Positions 1 through 23,832 of a stretch of 23,923 bases of DNA are shown one piece after another. Position 1 is the stretch's first letter. Each line of letters starts with the position of its first letter. Location of the stretch: positions 1 to 23,923 of the forward strand of contig NW_021836484.1 in assembly GCF_006345805.1 (NCBI RefSeq), given 5' to 3'. The position numbers were made by a program, and so were the translations under genes. This DNA comes from Octopus sinensis (Eukaryota). The notes under the pieces were generated by a model. The model saw only the letters and a list, made by a program, of their open reading frames with translations, did not search any database and was not told the DNA's origin.

Positions 1-2111
1 TCCAGTTCTGCTCCACGGAAAGGCCTTCCCTGTTCCTGCCCACACGGAGCAGGGTCGATGGACTGACACCTGTCGCAGCTCCCGACCACCTTCCGGACGC
101 TTCACCTAGTGACGTCAGCATCATTTTTTTTTTGCACAGATACAGGGTCCTGCCCACACCCAGGTGATGCATAGCATGTTGTAGTTCTTCAGTTCAGAGT
201 CATAAACCGACACGCCGCAGCTATCCCTTTCCGGGCCTCCTCCGGTTCTTCCAACCACGCTCTTTTCACCCTGGTCAGTACGTCCTCCGCCCTTTTTTCT
301 CCGAAGGCCGAAAACAACGTTCATTCAGTCCGAATTCGGCGATCAATTCACCTAGAACTCCTAGACGGCGCTTCACTAACATCTCCGCAGCACCTTTCGT
401 CCGCACTCTCCTGTCACCGGTGATCACCGATCCTACCCAGCCAAGCACAGTGGCCGAATCCGTCCGCATTTCAATCGTGCGCAGCCCCCATTTCAAGGCC
501 AAGTTCACCCCTTTCAGCAGCGCGTCTAATTCGGCGACATTGATGTGGTTGAAATCATCTGCTTTCCGAAGCCAGGCCGCGTCCTCCACCGCAGTGCCTT
601 CGATTGCCAACACCACCCCTATCGCTATACTGCTAGCATCACACCAGAGGGTCCCGCATTTCGTCTTGGTCACGTACCAGTTCCCCCTGACCGGGTCTTC
701 CACTCTTGTTTTCTCTAGGATCTCCTGCATCATCGCCACCGTCCCTTCTCCCACCTTGTCGCCCCACCTCTCTCTTCTGCTCGTCTATTGGTGTGTAACT
801 ACACGCCGTGCGCAGCCATCCAGCGATCGGGTAGTGACCGACCAACTTCCCACACACCGAGAACAGCTCTCTCCTGCTGACGCTGGAACTCAGCTCTGGG
901 ATTTCATTTCCTCTCCGGAACACCAATTCACCTGATCCATCTCTTCGCAGCTTCAGCCCCAGCGCGGCTCCCCCTTCAATCGACTCCGGTGGCTTAGCAA
1001 TCAGTCCGAACTTCTCCAGATGTCTAACTACCTCGTCGGCTGGCACCCAGTTTCGTCCACCAAAATGTCGTCAATGTAGGAGCTAGTGGCCTTTCTAATC
1101 TTGCCGTCTTTCCCTAGGACGGACCTAAGCACTGCCGCCATGATCTTCGGAGCGGAATTCAGCCCGAAACCCAGCCTGGTTAGACAGTACGTCCGGTCCT
1201 TGTACCGCACCAGCTGATATCGCCATAGTTTGTCGCTCACATGGAGCTGCAAGTATGCCGATCTCAAGTCGACAATCGTCGCTGCCTCAGTCGACTGTCT
1301 CCACTTACGTAATGCCTCACCACAAACGTCTGTCGCCTCACCTCCCGTGTGACACGATATGTGCTGGTTTAGCTCCTGAAGTCCAGCACCGGTCTGACTT
1401 TCCCTTCGTAGGCTGCACCACCGCCATCAGGGGTAGCACTCCGCCCGCTACCTCCCCCCTTCCAAGGGACAAGGACCCCTTCCTCGATCTACCTCTTCCA
1501 CCTCGTCTTCAAACTCGACCCTGGCGTGGCCTTTCAGGGTATGCTGGTAACAGCTCACCCTGTTCTCCAGCGTCGGGGGCTCGTCCTTCCATCGCCACTC
1601 TATCGTCCACCGCTGACCATCGAACGCCGCCTGAAAGTATTTGTCCTCGATGGTGTAAGCGGCGCAGTCCCTCGCGGGGCTCTGCTCTCTCTGGCGATCC
1701 TGACTCGCAGTGCACGACGCCCCACGCTTCTGAACGTGACCTCATTTCCCACAACACTGACGCCACCGAGGCAGTTGATGGCGTCCATCCCCATCACCAC
1801 ATCAACTCCATCTATCACGCGTTCGGCCAAATTGCCTGCAGCCTTAGCGTCGCGCCGCGCACCACTATCTCTACCTTGCTGCTGCCTCTGCAACGGATTT
1901 CGCTGCCGTCGACCGCCCGGACACTACTCACCCCGTTCCATTCCTTCGTCACCCTCGAAGTCACCAGGGTGGTCGTTCAGCCCGTATCCACAAGGGCCTT
2001 GAACGTCTCCCCCTCGACCTCCACGTCAATCAATGGCAGCGTCTCCAATAGCGCCTCTACTCGTTTGAGGGGAAAGTTCGAGAGGCAGCAACTTCCCCGC
2101 GGTCGTTTCCC
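1..2111 (-). pseudogene. pol: Pol: aspartic protease, reverse transcriptase, RNase H and N-terminus of integrase; multiple frameshifts and stops
   Basis: PR: ETFKALVDTG*TTTLV (TGA at 1977-1979) ... GVDVVMGMDAI. RT: KVRPVLDF, IVDLRSAYLQ, CLTRLGFGLNSAPKIM, YIDD at 1067-1078. RH: WCDASSIAIGVVL...HINVAELDALLKG...RTDS (ORF 275..754). IN zinc finger: HAMHHLGVGRTLYL...VRKVVGSCDRCQSIDP (about 55-190), with EGLSVEQNW at the window edge. Confidence 0.9.
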
Positions 2112-2825
2112 TGGTCGCAACCACGGGCAATGTGCCCTGTCTGCCTGCATCGATAGCAAACGGGCCCCGGCTGCGTACAGTCCCGCGCCATGTGCGGTCC
2201 CTGGCATCTAAAACACCGTCCTGAGAACGGCCGCTCTCGTTGCACGGTGAGCTTCTGTACCTCTTTCTCGGGACGTCGTCCGTCTTTACGCGCCTCCGTC
2301 ACCGCCATCGCTATCGCCTTCCGCCCAGAGTGTCTCGTCAACGCGCGAGCCTGAGCTACAAGTTCGCTCAATGGCATTTTTTAAACCCCGGGCAGTCGTT
2401 GTAGGTGAATCCCTACATCGTCGGGGAACCCATTCACGAACGCCAGTCGGGCTGCTCTCTCCAGTCCTTCTCCGGCAAACCCGGCCAGAGTCGCTAGCCT
2501 TCTAGCTTCTGATGCAAAGTCGTCCACTTGGCCTCCCGTCCACCTGATTGCACCTAGCTTAGCGAAAGCTGTGTACTCGCATTCCGTGTAGGCGTCACGC
2601 AAGCGTCGCTCTATATTCTCCTCGCTGAGCCGTTCCTCTTCATCCATCTCTAGGTAGAGCATCAACGCGCTCCCTTCCAAATACAGCGCATAAAGACTCG
2701 CCACGTCGCTTATGCCCTGCAGTCTCGCCACCAGCCTGATTTTGCGAATCCAGCCCACTACATCGCCTTCGCCTTTAAAAGGTCTGACGACGTCACTGGC
2801 GATCCTAATTTTGCAGACCTCGTGT
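2057..2825 (-). pseudogene. gag: Gag-like ORF with two zinc knuckles, interrupted by one in-frame stop
   Basis: Reads ...KIRIASDVVRPFKGEGDVVGWIRKIRLVARLQ... (ORF 2381..2758), then TAA at 2381-2383, then continues in frame as ORF 2057..2377. Knuckles are CFRCQGPHMARDC (one residue shorter than canonical) and CYRCRQTGHIARGC (CX2CX4HX4C). The start codon appears degraded near 2820-2825. Confidence 0.88.
2069..2111 (-). promoter_or_regulatory. Predicted -1 ribosomal frameshift cassette (gag to pol)
   Basis: Slippery heptamer G GGA AAC (2111-2105) is in the gag frame. It is followed by a 6-nt spacer and the hairpin GGGGAAGTT-11 nt loop-AACTTTCCCC (2098-2069). The -1 frame reads GKRPRGSCCLSNFPLKRVEALLETLP straight into the protease. 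Confidence 0.75.
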
Positions 2826-2852
2826 TGAAAAAAAATGTGAATGTTTAAGAAC

Positions 2853-2864
2853 GCCGAAATAGCT
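2853..2864 (-). other. Putative non-canonical primer-binding site, complementary to tRNA-Phe nt 1-12
   Basis: Minus strand AGCTATTTCGGC immediately follows the inferred LTR end. The plus strand GCCGAAATAGCT equals the first 12 nt of animal cytosolic tRNA-Phe(GAA) (GCCGAAATAGCTCAGTTGGG..., recalled from memory). Confidence 0.7.
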
Positions 2865-3140
2865 TGTAGTGAGTGCGCAAGAATATAGAGGCACCTACCT
2901 TCTCTTCGTAGTGACGGAGACCCTCCAGTGATGACTAGTCCTTCCTCACAGCCCGACCCGAAACACTAACGATAGCAGCTGCTAGCCCAAACCCTTAGCG
3001 ACGTCCTCACACGTCTTGTCACCTGCGACCGACCCACGTTGGAAAGGGCAATTTCCGCTCCCTGCGCACGCCTGACAGCTGACCCCTTCCGCTTGCCCCA
3101 GCTTCCGGTCAACGCACCCGGCTGCTGACGTCATCCCACA
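2865..3140 (-). repeat. Putative 5' LTR (~276 bp)
   Basis: On the minus strand it starts TGTGGGATGACG (3140) and ends CACTACA (2865), giving TGT...ACA termini. It lies upstream of gag and ends exactly where (TA)n begins. The second LTR is outside the window, so the boundaries are inferred. Confidence 0.7.
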
Positions 3141-3153
3141 ATTATATATATAT

Positions 3154-3184
<31 letters not shown>

Positions 3185-3190
3185 GTATAC
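3141..3190. repeat. (TA)n microsatellite flanking the LTR
   Basis: Direct reading of the sequence. Confidence 0.95.
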
Positions 3191-3404
3191 ACACTTATAC
3201 ACAGTGAAAAATATGAGGACCAAATTAAATAGATCAACACAATCAAAAGCGAAGCACACTGTTTGGCTAGACAGAAAACTCGAGAAAACTCAAAACATTC
3301 AGATAAGTGGTTAAGGGTAAACTGAACGGATATTCCACTGGTATCTAGTATTCCGCAAATAGAAAAGTATCGAAGGGTTTATTGGTACGTTTAACGCAAC
3401 GCAA

Positions 3405-3800
3405 TCTATATATATAAAGCTGAAGTTGTCTGTGTGTGGCAGGTTTGGTAGCCTTCAACTAACACTATCTCCTTCGAGACCCTGCGGCGCAAGTTGACCA
3501 GAATTGAGAGTATGATAGAAGAAGGCTTGCTCTTCCTTCCGTAGAAGAAAAAATTTAAATCGGACCGTGTTAACACCAAAAATTATTTACATCAAAAAGG
3601 TGCTTTTTTTCTATGAAAATCCCTATTTTTTACGATTTTTTGACTGCTGTGTCGCCATTTTTCGGTGTATTTCAACCAGAAAAATGTTCACTTAAAGAGA
3701 ACAACAGGCTACATAATGCAAAATTTTTACTTTTCGAAAATTCCAATTCTAAAGGGTCGAAAAGAAAACAAGCCCGAGCGACGCTGGGCTATACTGCTAG
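3405..3800 (+). mobile_element. Non-autonomous Helitron (396 bp)
   Basis: 5' TC terminus (A|TCTATATATATAAA at 3404/3405) and 3' CTAG|T (3797-3801), inserted between A and T with no TSD. Subterminal GC hairpin AGCCCGAGC-GAC-GCTGGGCT at 3771-3790. Confidence 0.85.
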
Positions 3801-3988
3801 TTATAGTAATAAAGATAAAACGAATAGGTAATTTGTGCATTACTATACGTGTTTCAGTTGCTAAAATTTGTCATTATTAACACATTGTGTCATACAACTT
3901 AGTATGCAATAATATACTAGATTATATAAGATTATGTGTTTACATAACATGGCCACTTCATCAGAGTTCTATGGGATTATGGTAGCAT

Positions 3989-4330
3989 ATGAAATTCTCA
4001 AGGAGAGCTGTGACAGTTGCCAGTATATACACCAAACAGCGAGTCCAAATAAAAATTTATCAACGGTTACTAGTTGATTATGTCATTATCTCTGACCGCT
4101 TTGATTCTGTGCTGAACGTTCGTGTAAAGAGAGAGGCAGGACTATCAACTCATCACCACCTAGTTGTCTGCAACCTGAGATTATCGACAGCGGGGAGAAT
4201 TCACAAAATGGGTAAGTTCAATGAGACTTACAGGATAAAGTAAGAAGCTCTGGTGAACGATGGAATCAGAAGCAAATATGCGGATATTTTGCATCCAAAA
4301 TCAGAGAGCTTCCAGAACAAACTGAGCAAA
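3989..4330 (+). pseudogene. Degraded RTE-type LINE fragment (C-terminal part of AP endonuclease)
   Basis: ORF 3989..4243 contains LVDYVIISDRFDSVLNVRVKREAGLSTHHHLVVCNLRL, which matches the IDY...RV.RGA..STDHHLV motif pattern of RTE endonucleases. Confidence 0.65.
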
Positions 4331-4510
4331 CGGGGACGAGATTGTTTTGTTTGGCAGTTTTATAATGTTGTCAACGAAAACGGATCTAGTTTAATCAGAA
4401 AGTTAGAAATGCTATCCGAGCAAAGACGGAGCATTACAAAGCTTTGATTGGAAACAAATTTCCACTTTTGCGAAATCCTTCGAACGTCTCTCTTCATTTT
4501 AAGACCTTTA

Positions 4511-4690
4511 TTCTTATTTCTTTATTGCCCACGAGGGGCTAAATATAGAAGGGACAGACAAGGAGATTAAGTCGATTACATCGACCCACAGTGCGTAACT
4601 GGTACTTAATTTATCGACCCCGAAAGGATGAAAGGCAAAGTCGACCTCGGCGGAATTTGAACTCAGAACGTAGCGGCAGACGAAATACCT
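4511..4690 (-). mobile_element. tRNA-derived SINE family 1, head-truncated unit of a tandem dimer
   Basis: Reverse complement contains the B-box GAGTTCAAATTCC, the central GTCGACTTTGCCTTTCATCCTTTCGGGGTCGATAAA (Meta/MESC-like domain) and an AATAAAGAAATAAG tail. It is homologous to 4691-4922 and 8709-8944. Confidence 0.85.
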
Positions 4691-4922
4691 ATTTCTTTAC
4701 TACCCACAAGGGGCTAAACACAGAGAGGATAAACAAGACAGGACAAACGGATTAAGTCGATTACATCGACCCCAGTGCGTAACTGGTAGTTATTTAATCG
4801 ACTCCGAAAGGATGAAAGGCAAAGTCGACCTCAGCGGAATTTGAACTCAGAACGTAGCGGCAGACGAAATACTACTAAGCATTTCGTCCGGCGTGCTAAC
4901 GATTCTGCCAGCTCGCCGCCTT
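4691..4922 (-). mobile_element. tRNA-derived SINE family 1, full-length
   Basis: Sense strand starts GGCGGCGAGCTGGCAGAATCGTTAGC (A-box-like), followed by the B-box GAGTTCAAATTCC and the same central domain and tail as the other copies. Confidence 0.88.
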
Positions 4923-6110
4923 GACGTTTATTCTTACCATCGAGAATTGTATGTTGTTGACGTCATAAGAATTTTATAAACTTTCGAGAGGAAATGAAAT
5001 AATTCGTTTTTCGAATATCTCGAAACACATACATAAATCTATCAGCTATAGCATATAAATATGTGAACGAAAAGCCCATTTTGGATAGAGAGAGTCGAAG
5101 CCAATATTTACATGCTTTTATAGTTTTATGTGTGTGTTTCGAGATATTCCAAAAAAGTTGAACTGAAGTTTTATACAAATACCTTTCAAACGGTGTAGAT
5201 TACGATTACAAAGAAATTTGTAGGCAAAATTTTTGGAAGGGGTGGGTGGGGGTGGAGCAGTTTCTGGAAAACGGTGTTTCGGATCGGACGGTCCACATAA
5301 GTTGGAATTTCTCCGTTTTGACGGGGATTTTTTCCAAAGTCGTCAGAATGATGGGAGACATCTTTTCACGAAAAAAAAAAAGAAAAAAATTTTGAAAATT
5401 TATTTCATTTCACTCCCGCCACCCCAGTCCGAAACGATTTTGGTCTTCTTTTTTTCTTTTTTCACTACGCACTTAAAACCCGTGAGAGAAACATCTTCGG
5501 TTTTAAAAAATATTGTTAATAATTTCAGTGGAAAATGTGTGATTTAAGGGAGATCTGGCTGTTGTTTCTAGCACATCTTAAAACCACCCTTGTTTCTTTC
5601 TCACTCACACATCTACTGATATTTTTCAATATTTTTCTCCCCATAAACAAATCTTATGGAATGGTGATGTCAAAATAACACACGTCCTAACCAAGCGTGG
5701 CCATGTTTATGTGTAAAAAAAAACAACCTAAAAATATATTTAGTATTCATATTAATCTGTCAAATGGAATTGTTTTATTTACGTTATTTTGAATTATTCA
5801 GGTTCAAGAGGGGTATCCACAATATTTGCTTGTTATTTTGTAAATTTTTTATATATAGATTTGAAATTTTGTCAGTGGGTGCTTTATATACCGCTGGTGT
5901 AATTTTAGCTGATCTTGCTGAGTAAATTTGACTTTTATGGGCAGGCAAATTTAATTAACAAGTGTAAAAGCAATAATCTATGGGTAAACAGTAATATGAA
6001 ATTCTTAATGCATCTACCTTTTTTGATCTGTTACTAAAATTATTCCAGATGGCAACCGACGAAGATTTTCTCACTTTTCAGATAAGGTAATTAATTTGAA
6101 TGAATTAATA

Positions 6111-8442: not shown

Positions 8443-8635
8443 GACTATGGCATTACAACCAGCCAGGAACAGTCTTCGCTACATTTGCGGTACCTGCCAG
8501 AGGGAGTGTTTGTCCAGGATAGGACTACACAGCCACAGCAGGAAATGTATCAGGACATGAAATATAAAAGCCGGACTAGACTACTTTATGCGCAACTCCA
8601 TTGTCTCCCGAGACAGAAAGGATGCCAACCAACCA
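8443..8635 (+). mobile_element. 5'-truncated RTE LINE insertion (3' end only) with 12-bp TSD
   Basis: 8444-8629 matches 12650-12835 at 185/186 nt and ends in a (CAAC)n tail. It is flanked by ACCTGTGTATGT at 8431-8442 and 8636-8647. Confidence 0.92.
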
Positions 8636-8708
8636 ACCTGTGTATGTATAAATGTGTGTGTGTGGCGACACCCATCCAGATTCACATACATAATCATTGA
8701 TACAAGCA

Positions 8709-8944
8709 GGTAGGCGAGCTGGCAGAAACGTTAGCACGCCGGGCGAAATGCTTATCGATATTCCGTTTAACGCTACGTTCTGAGTTCAAATTCCGCCGAG
8801 GTCGACTTTACCTTTCATCCTTTCGGGGTTGATTAAATTAAGTACCAGTTACGCACTGGGGTCGATGTAATCGACTTAATCCCTTTATCTGTCCTTATTT
8901 GTCCCTTCTATGTTTAGCCCCTTGTGGGCAATAAAGAAATAAGA
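8709..8944 (+). mobile_element. tRNA-derived SINE family 1, full-length
   Basis: GGCGAGCTGGCAGAAACGTTAGC head, GAGTTCAAATTCC B-box, central GTCGACTTTACCTTTCATCCTTTCGGGG and AATAAAGAAATAAGA tail. Confidence 0.88.
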
Positions 8945-9017
8945 TATATGCCCTCGTACATTCACATACCCCCCTCCCTCCCAGACACATATACACACGC
9001 ACGCACGCACATACACA

Positions 9018-9177
9018 TGACAGGCTTCTTTCAGTTTCCGTCTAACAAATCCACTTACGAGGCTATGGTCGGCCCGAGACTATAGTAGGAGACACTTGCC
9101 CAAGTTTCCTGCAGAGGGACTGAACTCAGAACCATGTTTGTTGGGAAACAGCTTCTTACACAGCCAAGCCTGCACCT
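9018..9177 (-). mobile_element. tRNA-derived SINE family 2 (CORE-like), head and core only
   Basis: Homologous to the heads of 14821-15214 and 23393-23832 (CTTCTTTCAGTTTCCGTCTA.CAAATCCAC...GACACTTGCCCAAG). Confidence 0.75.
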
Positions 9178-9410: not shown

Positions 9411-12400
9411 AACCGGAGGGGACACTTCAGTGCTGCTGTAAAAAGCTGCAGAAACAACACGGGAGGTAACAGTCACGAGTGATAAGTCCATTCAGATTGG
9501 CGTAAAATATGGGCGCTACGGGTTACCTCTGACGGTGGGAGGGATCTCCGTGTCCTATTGGTTAGCTACTGCCCACCTCAAGCTGGGCAGCCCCCAGTTA
9601 ATAAGGTGCTGACCCGCCACAGGCCGCCTGCTCCATTGGGTGCTTGGAGCTAAGAGTATAACTCGAAAAGCGGCCTGCAACCTCTGCACCAGGCAAACAA
9701 CTAAAAGTCAAGAAAACACCAGTTCTTCGGTTGGCAAGCTGGAATGTCAGGACCATGTGTCAGGATTGAAGACACAAGGAAAACGGCCATCATTGACCGT
9801 GAACTAAAGAGGCTCAACATAGATATTGCTGGGCTGCTGGAGACAGGACTTCCCTTTGTAGTGAGAAACTCACTACTCTCCTCAATAGAACCACCATCAG
9901 GAGGCACTGAGCGTATCCTCTCACTGCGCCTCTCGACTTCTTCTGGCTCAGTACATCTACTCAGCATCTATGCTCCCACTCTCTACAGCTCAGAGGAGAC
10001 CAAGGACCAGTTCTACAAAGACCTCAACTGTGTCATAGAAAATATACCAACGACTGAAAATATCTACCTTCTAGAGGATTTTAACGTTCGCGTGGGATCT
10101 GACCATGATTCGTGGCCCATTTGTGTTGGACACTTTGGTATTGGCAACATGAATGACAATGGTCAGAGACTACTCGAATTCTGCACATACCACAACCTGT
10201 GCATCTCAAACACATTCTTTACCAACAAGGCATCCTGGAGACATCCAAGATCTCACCACTGGCATCAGCTGGATCTCATCATTACACGGAGATCCTTTCT
10301 GAATTCTACTCTATTGACCCGCAGTTACCACAGCGCGGATTGTGACACAGACCACTCACTAATTAGAAGTAGGGTGAGGATTCTGCCTAAAAATGTCCAT
10401 CGCTCCAAGAAAGTGGGCCGACCACGCATCAACACCGCCAGAACCTCGGACCCTACACTGCGAAAATGTTTTGCTGCTTCTATCAAGGTTGCCCTCAGTA
10501 GCTGCCCAGCCTCCTCTGCTGAAAGTAGGTGAGACTATATCAGGGAAGCCTTGTATACGACATCAATAGATACTTTCGGCATGAAAGAAAGGCAAAACCC
10601 AGATTGGTTCAATGCTGGGCTCTCAGAGCTGGAGCCAGTTATCGAAGCAAAGCGTGCAGCTCTAATGCAATACAAGAGTGACTCTTCTACAAAGTCACTC
10701 GAAGAACTCAGAAAGGCACGAAATAAAACCCAACTGACAGCTAGACGCTGTGCAAATAAGTATTGGCAGGAAATCTGTCAGAGTATCCAGTCAGCTGCTG
10801 ACAGGGGCGACAAACCCGTGGGATGTATGCCGGTTTGAAGAAGGCCCTCGGTCCATCCGCAACAAGTCAGCCCCTCTGAAATCAACTACTGAGGATCTCA
10901 TCAGGGACCAAGGCAAGCAAATGGATAGATGGGTGGAGCACTACAGATCTCTACTCACGGGAGACTACAGTGGCTGAGGCTGCAGTCGAGAGTGTCAAGA
11001 TCTTGCTAGTCATGTGCGAACTTGACAGTCCGCCATCTATAGCAGAGCTCACCAAGGCTGTTGACTCCCTAGCAAGAAATAAGGCTCCGGAAAAGACGGC
11101 ATCCCCTCAGAGATCATCAAAGCCGGCAAAAACACCATCCTGCTTCGGCACCTTCATGAGCTTCTGTGTTAGTGCTGGGAAGAGGGTACAGTCCCTCAGG
11201 ATATGCGAGATGCTAACATCATTACGCTTTACAAAAACAAAGGTGACCGTGGTGATTGTAACAATTACCGTAGTATATCTCTTCTAAGCACTGTTGGAAA
11301 GACCTTTGCCCGCGTTATCCTGGCCAGGCTACAACTACTTGCTTCTCGAATCTATCCGGAATCGCAGTGTGGCTTTAGAAGAAGCAGATCAACTATCGAT
11401 ATGATATTCTCCATACGCCAACTTCAGGAGAAGTCCAGAGAGCAGAAAATGCCATTATATATGGCCTTCATTGATCTAACAAAGGCTTTTGACTCGGTAA
11501 GCAAATAGGCCTCTTCATCCTGCTCCAAAAAATCGGATGTCCACCAAAGCTGCTGAGGATTATCAAGTCTTTCCATGATGACATGCAGGCACAATACAGC
11601 ACAACGGTTCAACATCAGCCGCCTTCCAAATAAAAACGGGGCAAAGCAAGGTTGTGTCCTCGCTCCTACTTGTTTGGCATCTTCTTCTCGCTCTTACTTT
11701 CACATGCCTTTCAGACATCAGATGATGGAGTGTTTTGCACAGTAGAAGTGACGGGAAACTGTTCAATCTCTCGCGCCTGCGTGCCAAGCCCAAAATCAGA
11801 AACGTCCTGATCAAGGAGATGTTATTTGCTGATGATGCCGCTCTGGTAACACACACAGAAGAAGCCCTCCAAAGGCTCATTAACTGTTTTGAGCAAGCAT
11901 GTAACGACTTTGACTTAGCTATCAGCCTTAAGAAGACCAACATCATGGGCCAGGCTACATCGGACATCTCAAACATACATATTGGAGACCACAGATTACA
12001 AGAGGTGGAGAAGTTTACCTATCTGGGCTCTACCGTCACCTACAATCTATCCCTTGACGCTGAGCTCAATATACGCATTGGCAAGGCAGCTGCTGCGATG
12101 GCCCAACTCTCCAAACGGGCTTGGAACAACAATAAGCTGACCAAGACCACGAAAATGAAGATCTACCAGGCATGTGTACTCAGCACTCTACTGTATGGAA
12201 GCGAGACCTGGACGCTATACACACGCCAAGAGCGTCGCCTAAACATCTTTCACCTGCGCTGCCTCCGAAAAATCCTCCGCATCAAATGGCAGAATCATAT
12301 CCCAACAAAGATGTCCTCAGGCAAGCAGGAATACCAAGCATGTTTTGCACTCCTCACACAAAGACGTTTGAGATGGCTTGGGCATGTTAGCCGTATGAAA

Positions 12401-12838
12401 GATAGCAGAATCCCCAAGGACATACTCTACGGAGAGCTTGCTAGGGGTACTAGGTCTGTGGGTAGACCGATCTTACGTTACAAGGATGTTTGCAAAAGGG
12501 ACATGAAGGCCTGCAACATCAATATTAGCGGTTGGGAGGCAGTTGCCGGCAACCGTGGAGAATGGCGACGTACCGTAAAAGAGGGAATACAAAGGAGTGA
12601 CACAGAGAGAGAGGAGAAATGGAAAGAAAAGAAGAGACGTCAACAAGAAACTATGGCATTACAACCAGCCAGGAACAGTCTTCGCTACATTTGCGGTACC
12701 TGCCAGAGGGAGTGTTTGTCCAGGATAGGACTACACAGCCACAGCAGGAAATGTATCAGGACATGAAATGTAAAAGCCGGACTAGACTACTTTATGCGCA
12801 ACTCCATTGTCTCCCGAGACAGAAAGGATGCCAACAAC
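9411..12838 (+). mobile_element. RTE-clade LINE, near full-length, disrupted
   Basis: A ~300-bp 5' UTR, one EN-RT ORF (see next feature) and a 3' tail CCATTGTCTCCCGAGACAGAAAGGATGCCAACAAC followed by (TA)n. The 5' boundary is inferred from the end of the AT tract. Confidence 0.92.
9719..12766 (+). pseudogene. RTE ORF: AP endonuclease, reverse transcriptase and C-terminal Cys/His motif
   Basis: EN: LRLASWNVRTM, IYAPTL, DFNVRVG, LDLIITRR, DCDTDH. RT: LYKNKGDRGDCNNYRSISLL, QCGFRRSRSTIDMIF, FIDLTKAFDSV, LFADDAAL, FTYLGS. C-terminus: CGTCQRECLSRIGLHSHSRKC. Broken by stops (e.g. 10530-10532, 11506-11508), frameshifts and an apparent deletion near 9850. Confidence 0.93.
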
Positions 12839-14731: not shown

Positions 14732-15700
14732 AAAAAAAAACTCCCATCGATTGGAGATGTATTACGATGCTTTTTCTATCTCACACGTGATAAGAAAACG
14801 GCGAAAGAAACATTAGATACTACTCTTTTACTCTTACTTGTTTCAGTCAATTGACTGTGGCCATGCTGGAGCACCGCCGTTGGTCGAGGAAATCGACTCC
14901 AGGACTTATTCTTTGTAAGTCTAGTACTTATTCTACCGGTCTATTTTGCCGAACCGCTAAGTTACGGGTACGTAAGCACACCAGCATCAGCTGTCAAGCG
15001 ATGTTGTGGGGGAACAAACAAACACACACACACACACACACATACACATACAACGGGTTTTTTTCAGTTTCCGTCTACCAAATCCACTAACAAGGGTTTG
15101 GTCGGCCTGAGGCTATAGTGGAAGGCACTTGCCCAAGGTACCACGCAGTGGGACTGAACCCGGAACCATGTGGTTGGTAAGCAAGCTACTTACCACACAG
15201 CCACTCCTGCGCCTATATTGTGTATTCAGAAATTAATGAGATCTGGGGCAACCAGGGACAAACTACACGTACTTACCAAGATTCGAAAAACAATATAGAT
15301 CACTCTAAAATAACAAAATCAAAGAGAGATCAAAATCAAATTGCAAATTTAAGGATCGCAAGGATGACTTATTTGAAATTGTTCACGCTGATGCAATGAA
15401 AAGGGTGTCAGACGAAGAAGATCGTTTATTTCTAAATGGTCAGAGAGAGAGAAAGGAAGGCGAGTGTTATTGAGAGGAATTATGTTGCAAAGTAACAGAG
15501 GAAACACAAACGGCTAAAATAGGAAACGCAAACGGGTAGAAGAAGAAAAGAGACATAGCCGTCCTCACGCACTGCTCATGAGGAATTCCGGAAGGAGCTT
15601 TGTGAGACCACTGCTGAGACGCTTCCGAAAAAAATGAAAATTTCAGTAACCGTTGGAAAACCGATTATAGCAGCGACTCGATAAATTCCTAGCGATATCT
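14732..15700 (+). pseudogene. Degenerate DNA-transposon protein remnant (hAT/hATm-like N-terminal half), interrupted by a SINE
   Basis: KKLPSIGDVLRCFFYLTRDKKTAKETLD before the SINE. After it: IVYSEINEIW, and in a shifted frame KDDLFEIVHADAMKRVSDEEDRLFLNGQRE (from 15360). These resemble KLPS..VL..FFY / LF.IAHADA....EED..FL..QR motifs I associate with hATm-type transposases; the family assignment is from memory. Confidence 0.5.
14821..15214 (-). mobile_element. tRNA-derived SINE family 2 (octopus OR/OK-like, CORE-like), full-length
   Basis: Sense head AGGCGCAGGAGTGGCTGTGTGGTAAG...GGGTTCAGTCCC (A/B boxes), CORE-like GGTACCTTGGGCAAGTG, an internal (TG)n, and a LINE-like tail GGTGCTCCAGCATGGCC...GAAACAAGTAAGAGTAAAAGAGTA. 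Homologous to 23393-23832. Confidence 0.88.
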
Positions 15701-16078: not shown

Positions 16079-16384
16079 CATATAAAGTCATCAATGACAG
16101 AGAAGTGGTTTGATGAAATCTTATTTAACATTAAGAAAATTCTAATATTACGGCAAATCGTTTCGTGATTCAAAAATATGCAGATAACTTATACTATATT
16201 TAATGATAGATAAATTACTTAGATACCTGCATTAATGCAAAATGCAAAAAATCCTTCAAAGTAATGCAGAATTTAAGCTACGCCCTTAGGTGAAAGATGT
16301 AACGTTATAGGAACGCCAAGTCAACACTTTAAAAGATTATGGAAGACAATAATAATAAAATTGATATAAATTAATAGGATTTTC

Positions 16385-17239
16385 GGATCTTTTCCTTTTG
16401 AACGGCATATGTCAACACAATTTCTAGTTAACTAAACACTTTTAAACTTCGTATACTGGTAGAATGTGTTTATAAAACATCATTTTTTCTTGGCTTTATT
16501 GAGAAAATTCTATAGTTTGTAACATATTTCCACTTTAAAATCGAGCATTTCGGCAATTTTAACCAATCAAATACGTCCATTTGGAGTCAAAACATACCGT
16601 GCTGTATGAATATGTCACTTGTTTAAGAAACAGATTGGGTTTATTTACATTTGCGAAGAAAAAAATATACCCTTCCCCCACCCCTGACCCTACCCCTAAC
16701 CCTAACTCTAACCCTAACGCTAACTAACCCTAACCCTAAAATAGATTGAAATGCAAAGATCGATACTAGGGTTATAATTATGGGTGACAATTTCATACGA
16801 CACCGCCACAGAAAATGAGATTTTTTCCTAGCGGTGTCAAATGAAAATGTCACCCATAATTATAACCCTAGTATCGATCTTTGCATTTCAATCTATTTTA
16901 GGGTTTGGTTTAGTTAGAGTTAACGTTAGGGTTAGGGTTAGGGGCGGGGGAAGGGTATCTTTTTTTCTTCGCAAATGTAAATAAACCCAATCTGTTTCTT
17001 AAACGAGGACATATTCATACTGCACGGTATGTTTTGACTCCAAATGGACGTATTTGATTGGTTAAAATTGCCGAAATGCTCGATTTTAAAGTGGAAACAT
17101 GTTACAAACTATAGAATTTTCTCAATAAAGCCAAGAAAAAATGATGTTTTATAAACACATTCTACCAGTATACGAAGTTTAAAAGTGTTTAGTTAACTAG
17201 AAATTGTGTTGAAAATTGCCGTTCAAAAGGAAAAGATCC
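16385..17239. mobile_element. Foldback non-autonomous DNA transposon (855 bp; Merlin-like by GG termini and 8-bp TSD)
   Basis: Arms 16385-16806 and 16831-17239 are near-perfect inverted repeats starting GGATCTTTTCCTTTTGAACGGCA, with a 24-bp spacer. Flanks are GGATTTTC (16377-16384) and AGATTTTC (17240-17247), a 7/8 match. The foldback structure is certain; the superfamily is inferred. Confidence 0.85.
16681..16955. repeat. Inverted telomere-like tracts inside the foldback element
   Basis: Degenerate (CCCTAA)n at 16681-16740 and (TTAGGG)n at about 16898-16955. Confidence 0.9.
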
Positions 17240-17527
17240 AGATTTTCTAATAAATGGAAAGGAATTTTAGTAATATAATTAAAAATATATAAGTAACATA
17301 ATTAAACAATATTTTCATAATTTAGATTTCAAAAACGTAAGTTAAGTTGTACAGTAAGTATTTATAATTTAGTTTTCTCTTTAAACAGACGATATTTAAT
17401 CTTTTTAAAAATTATTTTCAAATGAATACCATTACAAAAATGTTTTGGGGTATATTTAAAAATTATTTTAAAGTGAAAATGACTTTAAAAATATAATAAT
17501 ATTGCGTAAAAGACCCATCTCTAACCT

Positions 17528-18527: not shown

Positions 18528-18697
18528 GGGGTCAATTACATCGATCCCAGTTTTTCACTAATACTTAATTTATCGACCCTGAAAGGATGAAAGGTGAAGT
18601 CAACCTCGGTGGAATTTGAACTGAAAACGTGAACACAGACGAAATACTGTTAAGCATATCGCCCGGCGTGCTAACGATTTTGCCAGCTGTCCATCTT
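18528..18697 (-). mobile_element. tRNA-derived SINE family 1, diverged copy
   Basis: TTTATCGACCCTGAAAGGATGAAAGG...GGAATTTGAACT...GGCGTGCTAACGATTTTGCCAGCT aligns with 4691-4922. Confidence 0.8.
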
Positions 18698-18710
18698 AAT
18701 AATAATAATG

Positions 18711-18744
<34 letters not shown>

Positions 18745-23392: not shown

Positions 23393-23832
23393 ACTCTTTT
23401 ACTCTTTTACTTGTTTCAGTCATTTGACTGCGGCCATGCTGGAGCACCGCCTTTAATCGAGCAACTCGACCCCGGAACTTATTCTATTGTAAGCCCAGTA
23501 CTTATTCTAATCGTCTCTTTTAACCGAACCGCTAAGTGACGGGGACACAAACACACCACCATCGGTTGTCAAGCAATGCTAGGGGGACAAACACAGACAC
23601 ACAAACACATACACGCATACATATATATATAATATATATAATATATATTATATATATATATATATATACTATATAACGACGGGCTTCTTTCAGTTTCCGT
23701 CTACCAAATCCACTCACAAGGCTTTGGTCGACCCGAGGCTATAGTAGAAGACAATTGCCCAAGGTGCCACGCAGTGGACTGAACCTTGAACCATGTGGTT
23801 GGTAGACAGGCTACTTACCACACAGCCACTCC
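23393..23832 (-). mobile_element. tRNA-derived SINE family 2, full-length with expanded internal microsatellite
   Basis: Collinear with 14821-15214 from tail (ACTCTTTTACTCTTTTACTTGTTTCAGTC) to head (CACACAGCCACTCC). Contains internal (CA)n plus about 55 bp of (TA)n. Confidence 0.88.

Follow-up and report, generated by a model that had tools for sequence, protein, structure and literature searches.

The 23.9-kb stretch of Octopus sinensis DNA analysed here, referred to below as the window, carries on its minus strand a decayed LTR retrotransposon that runs off the left edge; no second LTR was found within the window. Gag and the protease, reverse transcriptase (RT), RNase H and integrase parts of pol are all recognizable, though broken, with the integrase ending at the window edge (Table 1). 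The copy is dead, with stops and frameshifts all through pol.

Table 1. Features of the retrotransposon copy in the window.
Feature	Position	Strand	Description
5' LTR, 267 bp	2865..3131	-	Sense TGTGGG...CACTACA; inner edge from homology to relatives
Primer-binding site, predicted	2853..2864	-	Sense AGCTATTTCGGC; complementary to tRNA-Phe nt 1-12 (GCCGAAAUAGCU)
gag	2057..2830	-	From translation; one in-frame stop at 2381-2383; in-frame ATG lost
Aspartic protease region	1600..2056	-	ALVDTG at ~1980-1997; interrupted by a stop and frameshifts
Reverse transcriptase	1028..1560	-	YIDD at 1067-1078; frameshifted; pol alignment A3 consensus
DUF7047	792..878	-	Pfam E 4.5e-14
RNase H domain	275..754	-	WCDASS...TDSAT; RVT_3 E 1.9e-7
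Integrase start (HHCC zinc finger)	1..190	-	'MHHLGVGRTLYL' versus A3 consensus 'MHHMGVDRTLYLARK'; cut by left window edge

On the plus strand, positions 2853-2864 read GCCGAAATAGCT and are followed by TGTAGTG (2865-2871). Read on the sense (minus) strand of the element, the junction is CACTACA/AGCTATTTCGGC, where the slash marks the LTR edge, with zero spacer between the 5' LTR and the 12-mer. The inner edge of the window LTR was set by relatives whose LTR pairs end in ...ACA right before AGCTAT, and the outer edge was inferred from the TG dinucleotide and a repeat boundary. A (TA)n microsatellite (3131-3185) adjoins this outer edge and makes the target duplication unreadable, even with the 3' end at hand.

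The gag translation contains two CCHC zinc knuckles at approximately 2120-2218 (zf-CCHC, Pfam E 2.9e-8), the ALVDTG of the protease agrees with the 'ALVDTGC' in the consensus of pol alignment A3, and the RT open reading frame at 1028-1267 reads 'LTRLGFGLNSAP...SSYIDDILV'. The RNase H fragment shares 85% identity with Octopus sinensis LOC115216286 and 81% with an O. bimaculoides protein. In the AlphaFold model of a relative, the DUF7047 counterpart comprises three helices (390-447; mean pLDDT 77) and is read here as a predicted RT thumb, with RNase H apparently following directly, without a tether domain. Two earlier readings were rejected. A diverged 3' LTR at window positions 1-135 had rested on a 59% alignment, and positions 1-190 encode the integrase zinc finger instead. 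An integrase-less family, considered because no integrase domain is on record for the pol gene, was discarded after a relaxed Pfam scan and PDB matches revealed a short integrase.

Across the family, 32 pol proteins matched RVT_1, DUF7047, RVT_3/RNase_H, Integrase_H2C2 and rve, and none of these proteins contained the signature domains of BEL/Pao (Peptidase_A17/DUF1758-9), copia (RVT_2) or gypsy (RT_RNaseH). The protease–RT–RNase H–integrase (PR-RT-RH-IN) order excludes copia. The PDB yielded weak matches to retroviral proteins (MMTV integrase, 1e-10; foamy virus PR-RT, 4e-4), a fold search against viral structures returned only generic retroviral and caulimoviral Pol matches, and a scan of a viral contig collection with the pol profile yielded no relative.

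The remainder of the window is rich in other repeats. A LINE-like (non-LTR) retrotransposon, recognizable by its endonuclease ORF and RT fragments, occupies 9744-12766 on the plus strand, and its last ~190 bp recur 4.2 kb upstream at 99% identity (8444-8633 versus 12650-12838). Since these repeats lack TG..CA ends, the upstream one probably represents a second, 5'-truncated LINE-like copy of which the 3' end is left, rather than one half of an LTR pair. Two families of short interspersed repeats, probably SINEs, were also observed (14831-15207, 23404-23832 and 8982-9173; 4572-4922, 8690-8941 and 18531-18715), with copies 71-91% identical in both families and some of them inverted. A large near-perfect palindrome lies at 16371-17253; its arms, 246 nt each, show 96% complementarity, further inverted repeats are nested inside it, and either a foldback-type element or an inverted duplication may underlie it.

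Relatives of the element were gathered via their gag or pol proteins, so that the sample is blind to the 12-mer motif. The window gag has 23 homologues with 32-53% identity over the aligned part (best full-length match, 48%), and an intact pol query gave 835 matches at E<1e-20. Named hosts include Octopus sinensis, Argonauta hians and the crabs Petrolisthes manimaculis and P. cinctipes; a search with RNase H extended the list to Oratosquilla, Elysia and the bryozoan Watersipora. Members of the family number in the hundreds, from molluscs, crustaceans, bryozoans and marine metagenomes, and the site is conserved over deep divergence. DNA was retrieved for 18 loci (L001-L018), of which L017 and L018, with identical protein and leader, were counted once, giving 17. 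Complete relatives span 4.17-4.41 kb; besides gag they encode a protease, RT, RNase H and a short integrase.

The LTR boundary was read from the relatives that retain both LTRs. In L002, L003, L010 and L011 the LTR pairs are 100% identical, measure 238-351 bp and are flanked by clean 5-bp target duplications (CTTTC, ACTGC, TAAAC and TCAGT), and a G-rich polypurine tract, e.g., GATCAGGGGGGCG, lies 5' of the 3' LTR. These LTRs start with TGTTG, or with TGTGG in L011, and all end in ACA except those of L011. The LTR pair of L016 is 90% identical, and L017 also contains both LTR ends. In all six of these loci AGCTAT... lies flush with the 5' LTR, and flanking DNA follows the 3' LTR. The LTR–LTR comparison thus shows that the boundary proposed in the initial annotation was right and that the 12-mer is internal to the element rather than LTR sequence; together with the window sequence, it upholds the claim that the 12-mer abuts the LTR end without a spacer, and the proposed check that the 12-mer should follow 5' LTRs only came out as expected in relatives with both LTRs.

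Several copies depart from this pattern. The intact L011 element (1625-6031, Argonauta hians) has LTRs ending in ...GATCAAG rather than CA despite its clean TCAGT duplication, and its final LTR base lengthens the pairing with tRNA-Phe to nt 13. L001 (8700-10861, Octopus sinensis) is a 1.9-kb copy with an internal deletion that retains gag and both LTRs, the latter 93-94% identical across the ~85 bp that can be aligned; its primer site has changed to ATTGGTATTTCGGCA, in which the acceptor-stem part alone is kept. The LTR junction of L005 was not readable.

An alignment of the junction from 15 loci, covering 25 nt upstream and 40 nt downstream of the LTR edge, revealed conserved columns only at tACA/AGCTAT-c.c-GGC. 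The LTR end followed by AGCTAT-NNN-GGC, or a decayed copy of it, was present in 16 of the 17 loci, with surroundings that were otherwise unalignable, which bears out the suggestion that the 12-mer is a trait of a distinct lineage. In the window the exact 12-mer occurs once, its chance expectation there being ~0.003 on both strands by simple arithmetic, and the sole further site at two mismatches or fewer, at 4679, is unrelated. The ~90-nt window leader preceding the gag homology contains no TGG, in agreement with the initial observation that a TGG-type site is absent. The LTR and the gag ATG are separated by 12-16 nt in several relatives; in L006, L007, L012, L013 and L014 the ATG lies 1-4 nt past the 12-mer block, which makes the block the sole non-coding stretch from U5 to gag and leaves no room for another primer site. 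Position and conservation considered, the 12-mer very likely acts as a primer site.

The base after the 12-mer was C (GGCC) in 9 of the 15 loci and is unpaired in mature tRNA. This extra C may, speculatively, represent a non-templated addition by RT at the primer 5' end, or else be a sign of a partner with an extra 5' G.

The sequence of tRNA-Phe is conserved animal-wide, and on this basis the octopus tRNA-Phe was taken to be alike. The 5' end of human tRNA-Phe(GAA) is GCCGAAATAGCTCAG, with GCCGAAATAGCT as its first 12 nt (published primer, PMC10505166), and that of human tRNA-Lys3 is GCCCGGATAGCTCAG (PMC8715211). Against the human tRNA-Phe reference, the window site is perfectly complementary to nt 1-12, as the initial annotation had claimed, including nt 8-12 beyond the acceptor stem. 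Six variants of the site were distinguished in the family (Table 2), and the L012 site, AGCTATCCGGGC, is the exact complement of nt 1-12 of tRNA-Lys3, i.e., Lys(UUU), again with the human sequence as reference. For the variants with implied primers GCCGGGAUAGCU, GCCGUGAUAGCU, GCCGCGAUAGCU and GCCUAGAUAGCU, a literature search found no matching tRNA. We know of no tRNA that fits these four. Some of these partnerless variants occur in elements with identical LTRs, and those sites must therefore work.

Table 2. Variants of the predicted primer-binding site (PBS), with the primer that each implies.
PBS	Implied primer	Loci
AGCTATTTCGGC	GCCGAAAUAGCU	Window, L008, L011, L017/L018; decayed in L004; partly kept in L001
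AGCTATCCCGGC	GCCGGGAUAGCU	L002, L003, L009
AGCTATCACGGC	GCCGUGAUAGCU	L007, L013, L014, L015
AGCTATCGCGGC	GCCGCGAUAGCU	L006
AGCTATCTAGGC	GCCUAGAUAGCU	L010, L016
AGCTATCCGGGC	GCCCGGAUAGCU	L012

Variation among the sites is restricted to tRNA nt 4-6, while GCC (nt 1-3) and AUAGCU (nt 7-12) of the implied primer are constant. The constant U8, A9, G10, C11 and U12 agree with the tRNA consensus, and nt 4-6 fall in the part of the acceptor stem where tRNAs differ; one conserved partner that tolerates mismatches, or a partner other than tRNA, would also fit these constant blocks. The predicted RNA duplex of the window site with tRNA-Phe comprises 12 bp at -18.7 kcal/mol, and perfect site–primer duplexes range from -18.7 to -23.5 kcal/mol. 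Pairing of the other variants with Phe or Lys introduces 1-3 mismatches and a loss of 6-13 kcal/mol. No further pairing of at least 8 nt with the rest of tRNA-Phe was detected within 300 nt on either side of the site, and no tRNA genes were found in the window (ARAGORN) or in L001-L005.

The Phe-type 12-mer is unchanged where gag is only 32-38% identical to that of the window. In a crude neighbour-joining tree of gag, the Phe-type site appears on both main branches and each other variant is limited to one, a distribution consistent with an early Phe-type state followed by switches. Assembly GCA_046766455.1 carries two families that differ in their variant, L012 (Lys-UUU type) and L015 (GCCGUGA type), an indication that a single host provides two or more primers.

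From these comparisons, we consider it probable that the 12-mer is a minus-strand primer-binding site that, family-wide and directly after U5, pairs with the first 12 nt of a cytoplasmic tRNA. On the best reading, the partner would be tRNA-Phe in the window copy and in four or five other lineages, and tRNA-Lys(UUU) in one lineage. In the mechanism that we propose, the element RNA would invade the acceptor and D stems of the tRNA to form a 12-bp duplex ending at the tRNA 5' terminus. Since tRNA base 12 pairs with the first base after U5, it is base 12 that must bear the 3'-OH, and a cut between nt 12 and 13 (U12/C13), at the inner edge of the duplex, would be required to place this 3'-OH at the first base past U5. 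RT would then extend the 12-nt 5' fragment of the tRNA into minus-strand strong-stop DNA, and plus-strand strong-stop synthesis would copy the 12-nt RNA and run off at the tRNA 5' end; such a run-off would account for the exact 12-nt length of the conserved block. Candidates for the cutting enzyme are the RNase H of the element, by analogy with Tf1, or a host nuclease that produces short 5' tRNA fragments. To our knowledge, nt 1-12 of tRNA-Phe carry no copy-blocking modification, and the cutting of an RNA:RNA duplex after nt 12 is without precedent for any tRNA. Our judgement is evenly balanced on the fuller proposal that a widespread LTR lineage may use, as the starting point of reverse transcription, the 12 nt at the 5' terminus of a host tRNA (Phe, Lys-UUU and others), released as a primer by a cut in the D stem.

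The primer could instead be another small RNA with a tRNA-like 5' end, such as a tRNA-derived SINE RNA, a precursor tRNA or a Pol III transcript, or one RNA that tolerates mismatches at positions 4-6. Such a partner would account for the four of six variants that fit no known tRNA and for the constancy of GCC and AUAGCU, given that no site matches any of the other tRNAs with a UAGCU D arm (Ala, Cys, Tyr, Ile). It would also accommodate the C at base 13, which would need a G upstream of position 1; such a G is absent from mature tRNAs except tRNA-His. However, that C could equally come from the non-templated addition considered above, two variants are perfect over 12 of 12 nt with Phe and Lys(UUU), and the mismatches and energy lost on cross-pairing are unlikely to be borne by elements with identical LTRs. 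We regard a primer of this kind as unlikely. A role in cis, with the block serving in packaging, dimerisation or the translation start context while its tRNA match is coincidental and priming proceeds otherwise, draws on the location of the block only 1-40 nt ahead of the gag start and on the fact that the priming role rests on sequence comparison. Nevertheless, the block lies flush with U5, which is the exact position of a primer site, and no alternative candidate site is available. A pairing partner for a cis signal would be expected within the element and none was found, and locally the RNA does not fold better than shuffled sequence (z 0.46). Moreover, 12/12 matches to two tRNAs starting from nt 1 each have a chance probability of ~3e-6, assuming ~45 distinct tRNA 5' ends, and a purely cis-acting role appears decidedly improbable.

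Self-priming of the Tf1/sushi type, in which the element transcript pairs its own 5' end with the site and is then cut, shares with our proposal a site of similar length (12 nt here, 11 nt in Tf1) and pairing with the 5' end of an RNA. A complement of the site was nevertheless absent at three mismatches or fewer from the 400 nt upstream in every relative, and at two or fewer from anywhere in five complete elements or the window copy. The best site in the window LTR has 3 mismatches, which arithmetic makes a ~10% chance event, and it is not conserved in relatives; the argument of the initial annotation that the LTR lacks a copy of the 12-mer is thereby sustained. With the complement missing from LTRs and whole elements alike, priming of the Tf1 type is excluded on the available sequences, and we leave self-priming in general very little probability. 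That the LTR edge is misplaced and an ordinary TGG... site for a tRNA 3' end lies elsewhere is scarcely credible: the edge in the window itself is only inferred, but relatives that retain both LTRs and a target duplication place it exactly, no TGG occurs in the leader, and gag begins 1-4 nt past the block in several relatives.

The priming of LTR elements is taught as three modes, i.e., from the 3' end of a tRNA, from an internal tRNA cut (copia, Ty5) and by self-priming (Tf1). If the proposal holds, this family would represent a fourth mode and a trans-acting counterpart of Tf1 self-priming, and it would pose the biochemical question of what cuts a tRNA after nt 12. It is known that 3' tRNA fragments silence LTR elements via their primer sites; for this family 5' rather than 3' tRNA fragments could feed or block priming, and the class suited to silencing it would be the 5' fragments, which are abundant. 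We found no account, in the open-access full-text literature, of primer sites that pair with the 5' end of a tRNA, which is weak evidence of absence. A large recent survey of metazoan elements tested the last 12 nt of tRNAs only (PMC13524379). As standard pipelines check tRNA 3' ends only, elements such as these would score as being without a primer site.

Among described LTR lineages, the family resembles Troyka and the Kuafuorterviruses, which are likewise little-known lineages of aquatic invertebrates with a PR-RT-RH-IN order. Membership in either was considered and rejected. Troyka elements have CG..CG termini and 3-bp target duplications (PMC12440569), whereas the family described here has TG..CA termini, 5-bp duplications and a YIDD motif, and the comparison with Troyka drawn in the initial annotation did not hold. 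Kuafuorterviruses carry the RT motif I/V/LADD and measure 5-6 kb (PMC11673190), against YIDD and 4.17-4.41 kb here.

With canonical elements that are primed from tRNA 3' ends, this family shares the placement of its site flush with U5, TG..CA termini, a target duplication and a polypurine tract ahead of the 3' LTR. The termini are seen in the window LTR (TGTGGG...CACTACA) and in the relatives, except that the L011 LTR ends in ...CAAG; the tract is seen in the relatives. However, the window has no canonical TGG... site, and the family's site is complementary to the opposite end of the tRNA.

In copia, 1731, Ty5 and Tca2, a tRNA is cut in its anticodon stem and the resulting 5' fragment, ~39 nt long, primes reverse transcription; sites of the copia/Ty5 type pair with approximately nt 25-39, in most cases of initiator tRNA-Met. 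The family described here is similar in that the primer would be the new 3' end of a cleaved 5' tRNA piece rather than a CCA end, and in having no TGG site. In contrast to copia and Ty5, its complementarity covers nt 1-12 of Phe, Lys and other primers rather than ~nt 25-39, the implied cut lies in the D stem, and the site spans the whole fragment up to the tRNA 5' terminus.

In Tf1, the element transcript pairs its own 5' end with the site over 11 bp and is cut at the edge of this duplex. Self-priming has been described for Tf1/Tf2/Tj1 and the sushi group (PMC4600332). The present family would share with these elements a duplex of 11-12 bp with the extreme 5' end of an RNA and an implied cut at its edge, possibly by the RNase H of the element; whereas the partner of Tf1 is its own transcript in cis, the partner here would apparently be a host tRNA acting in trans.
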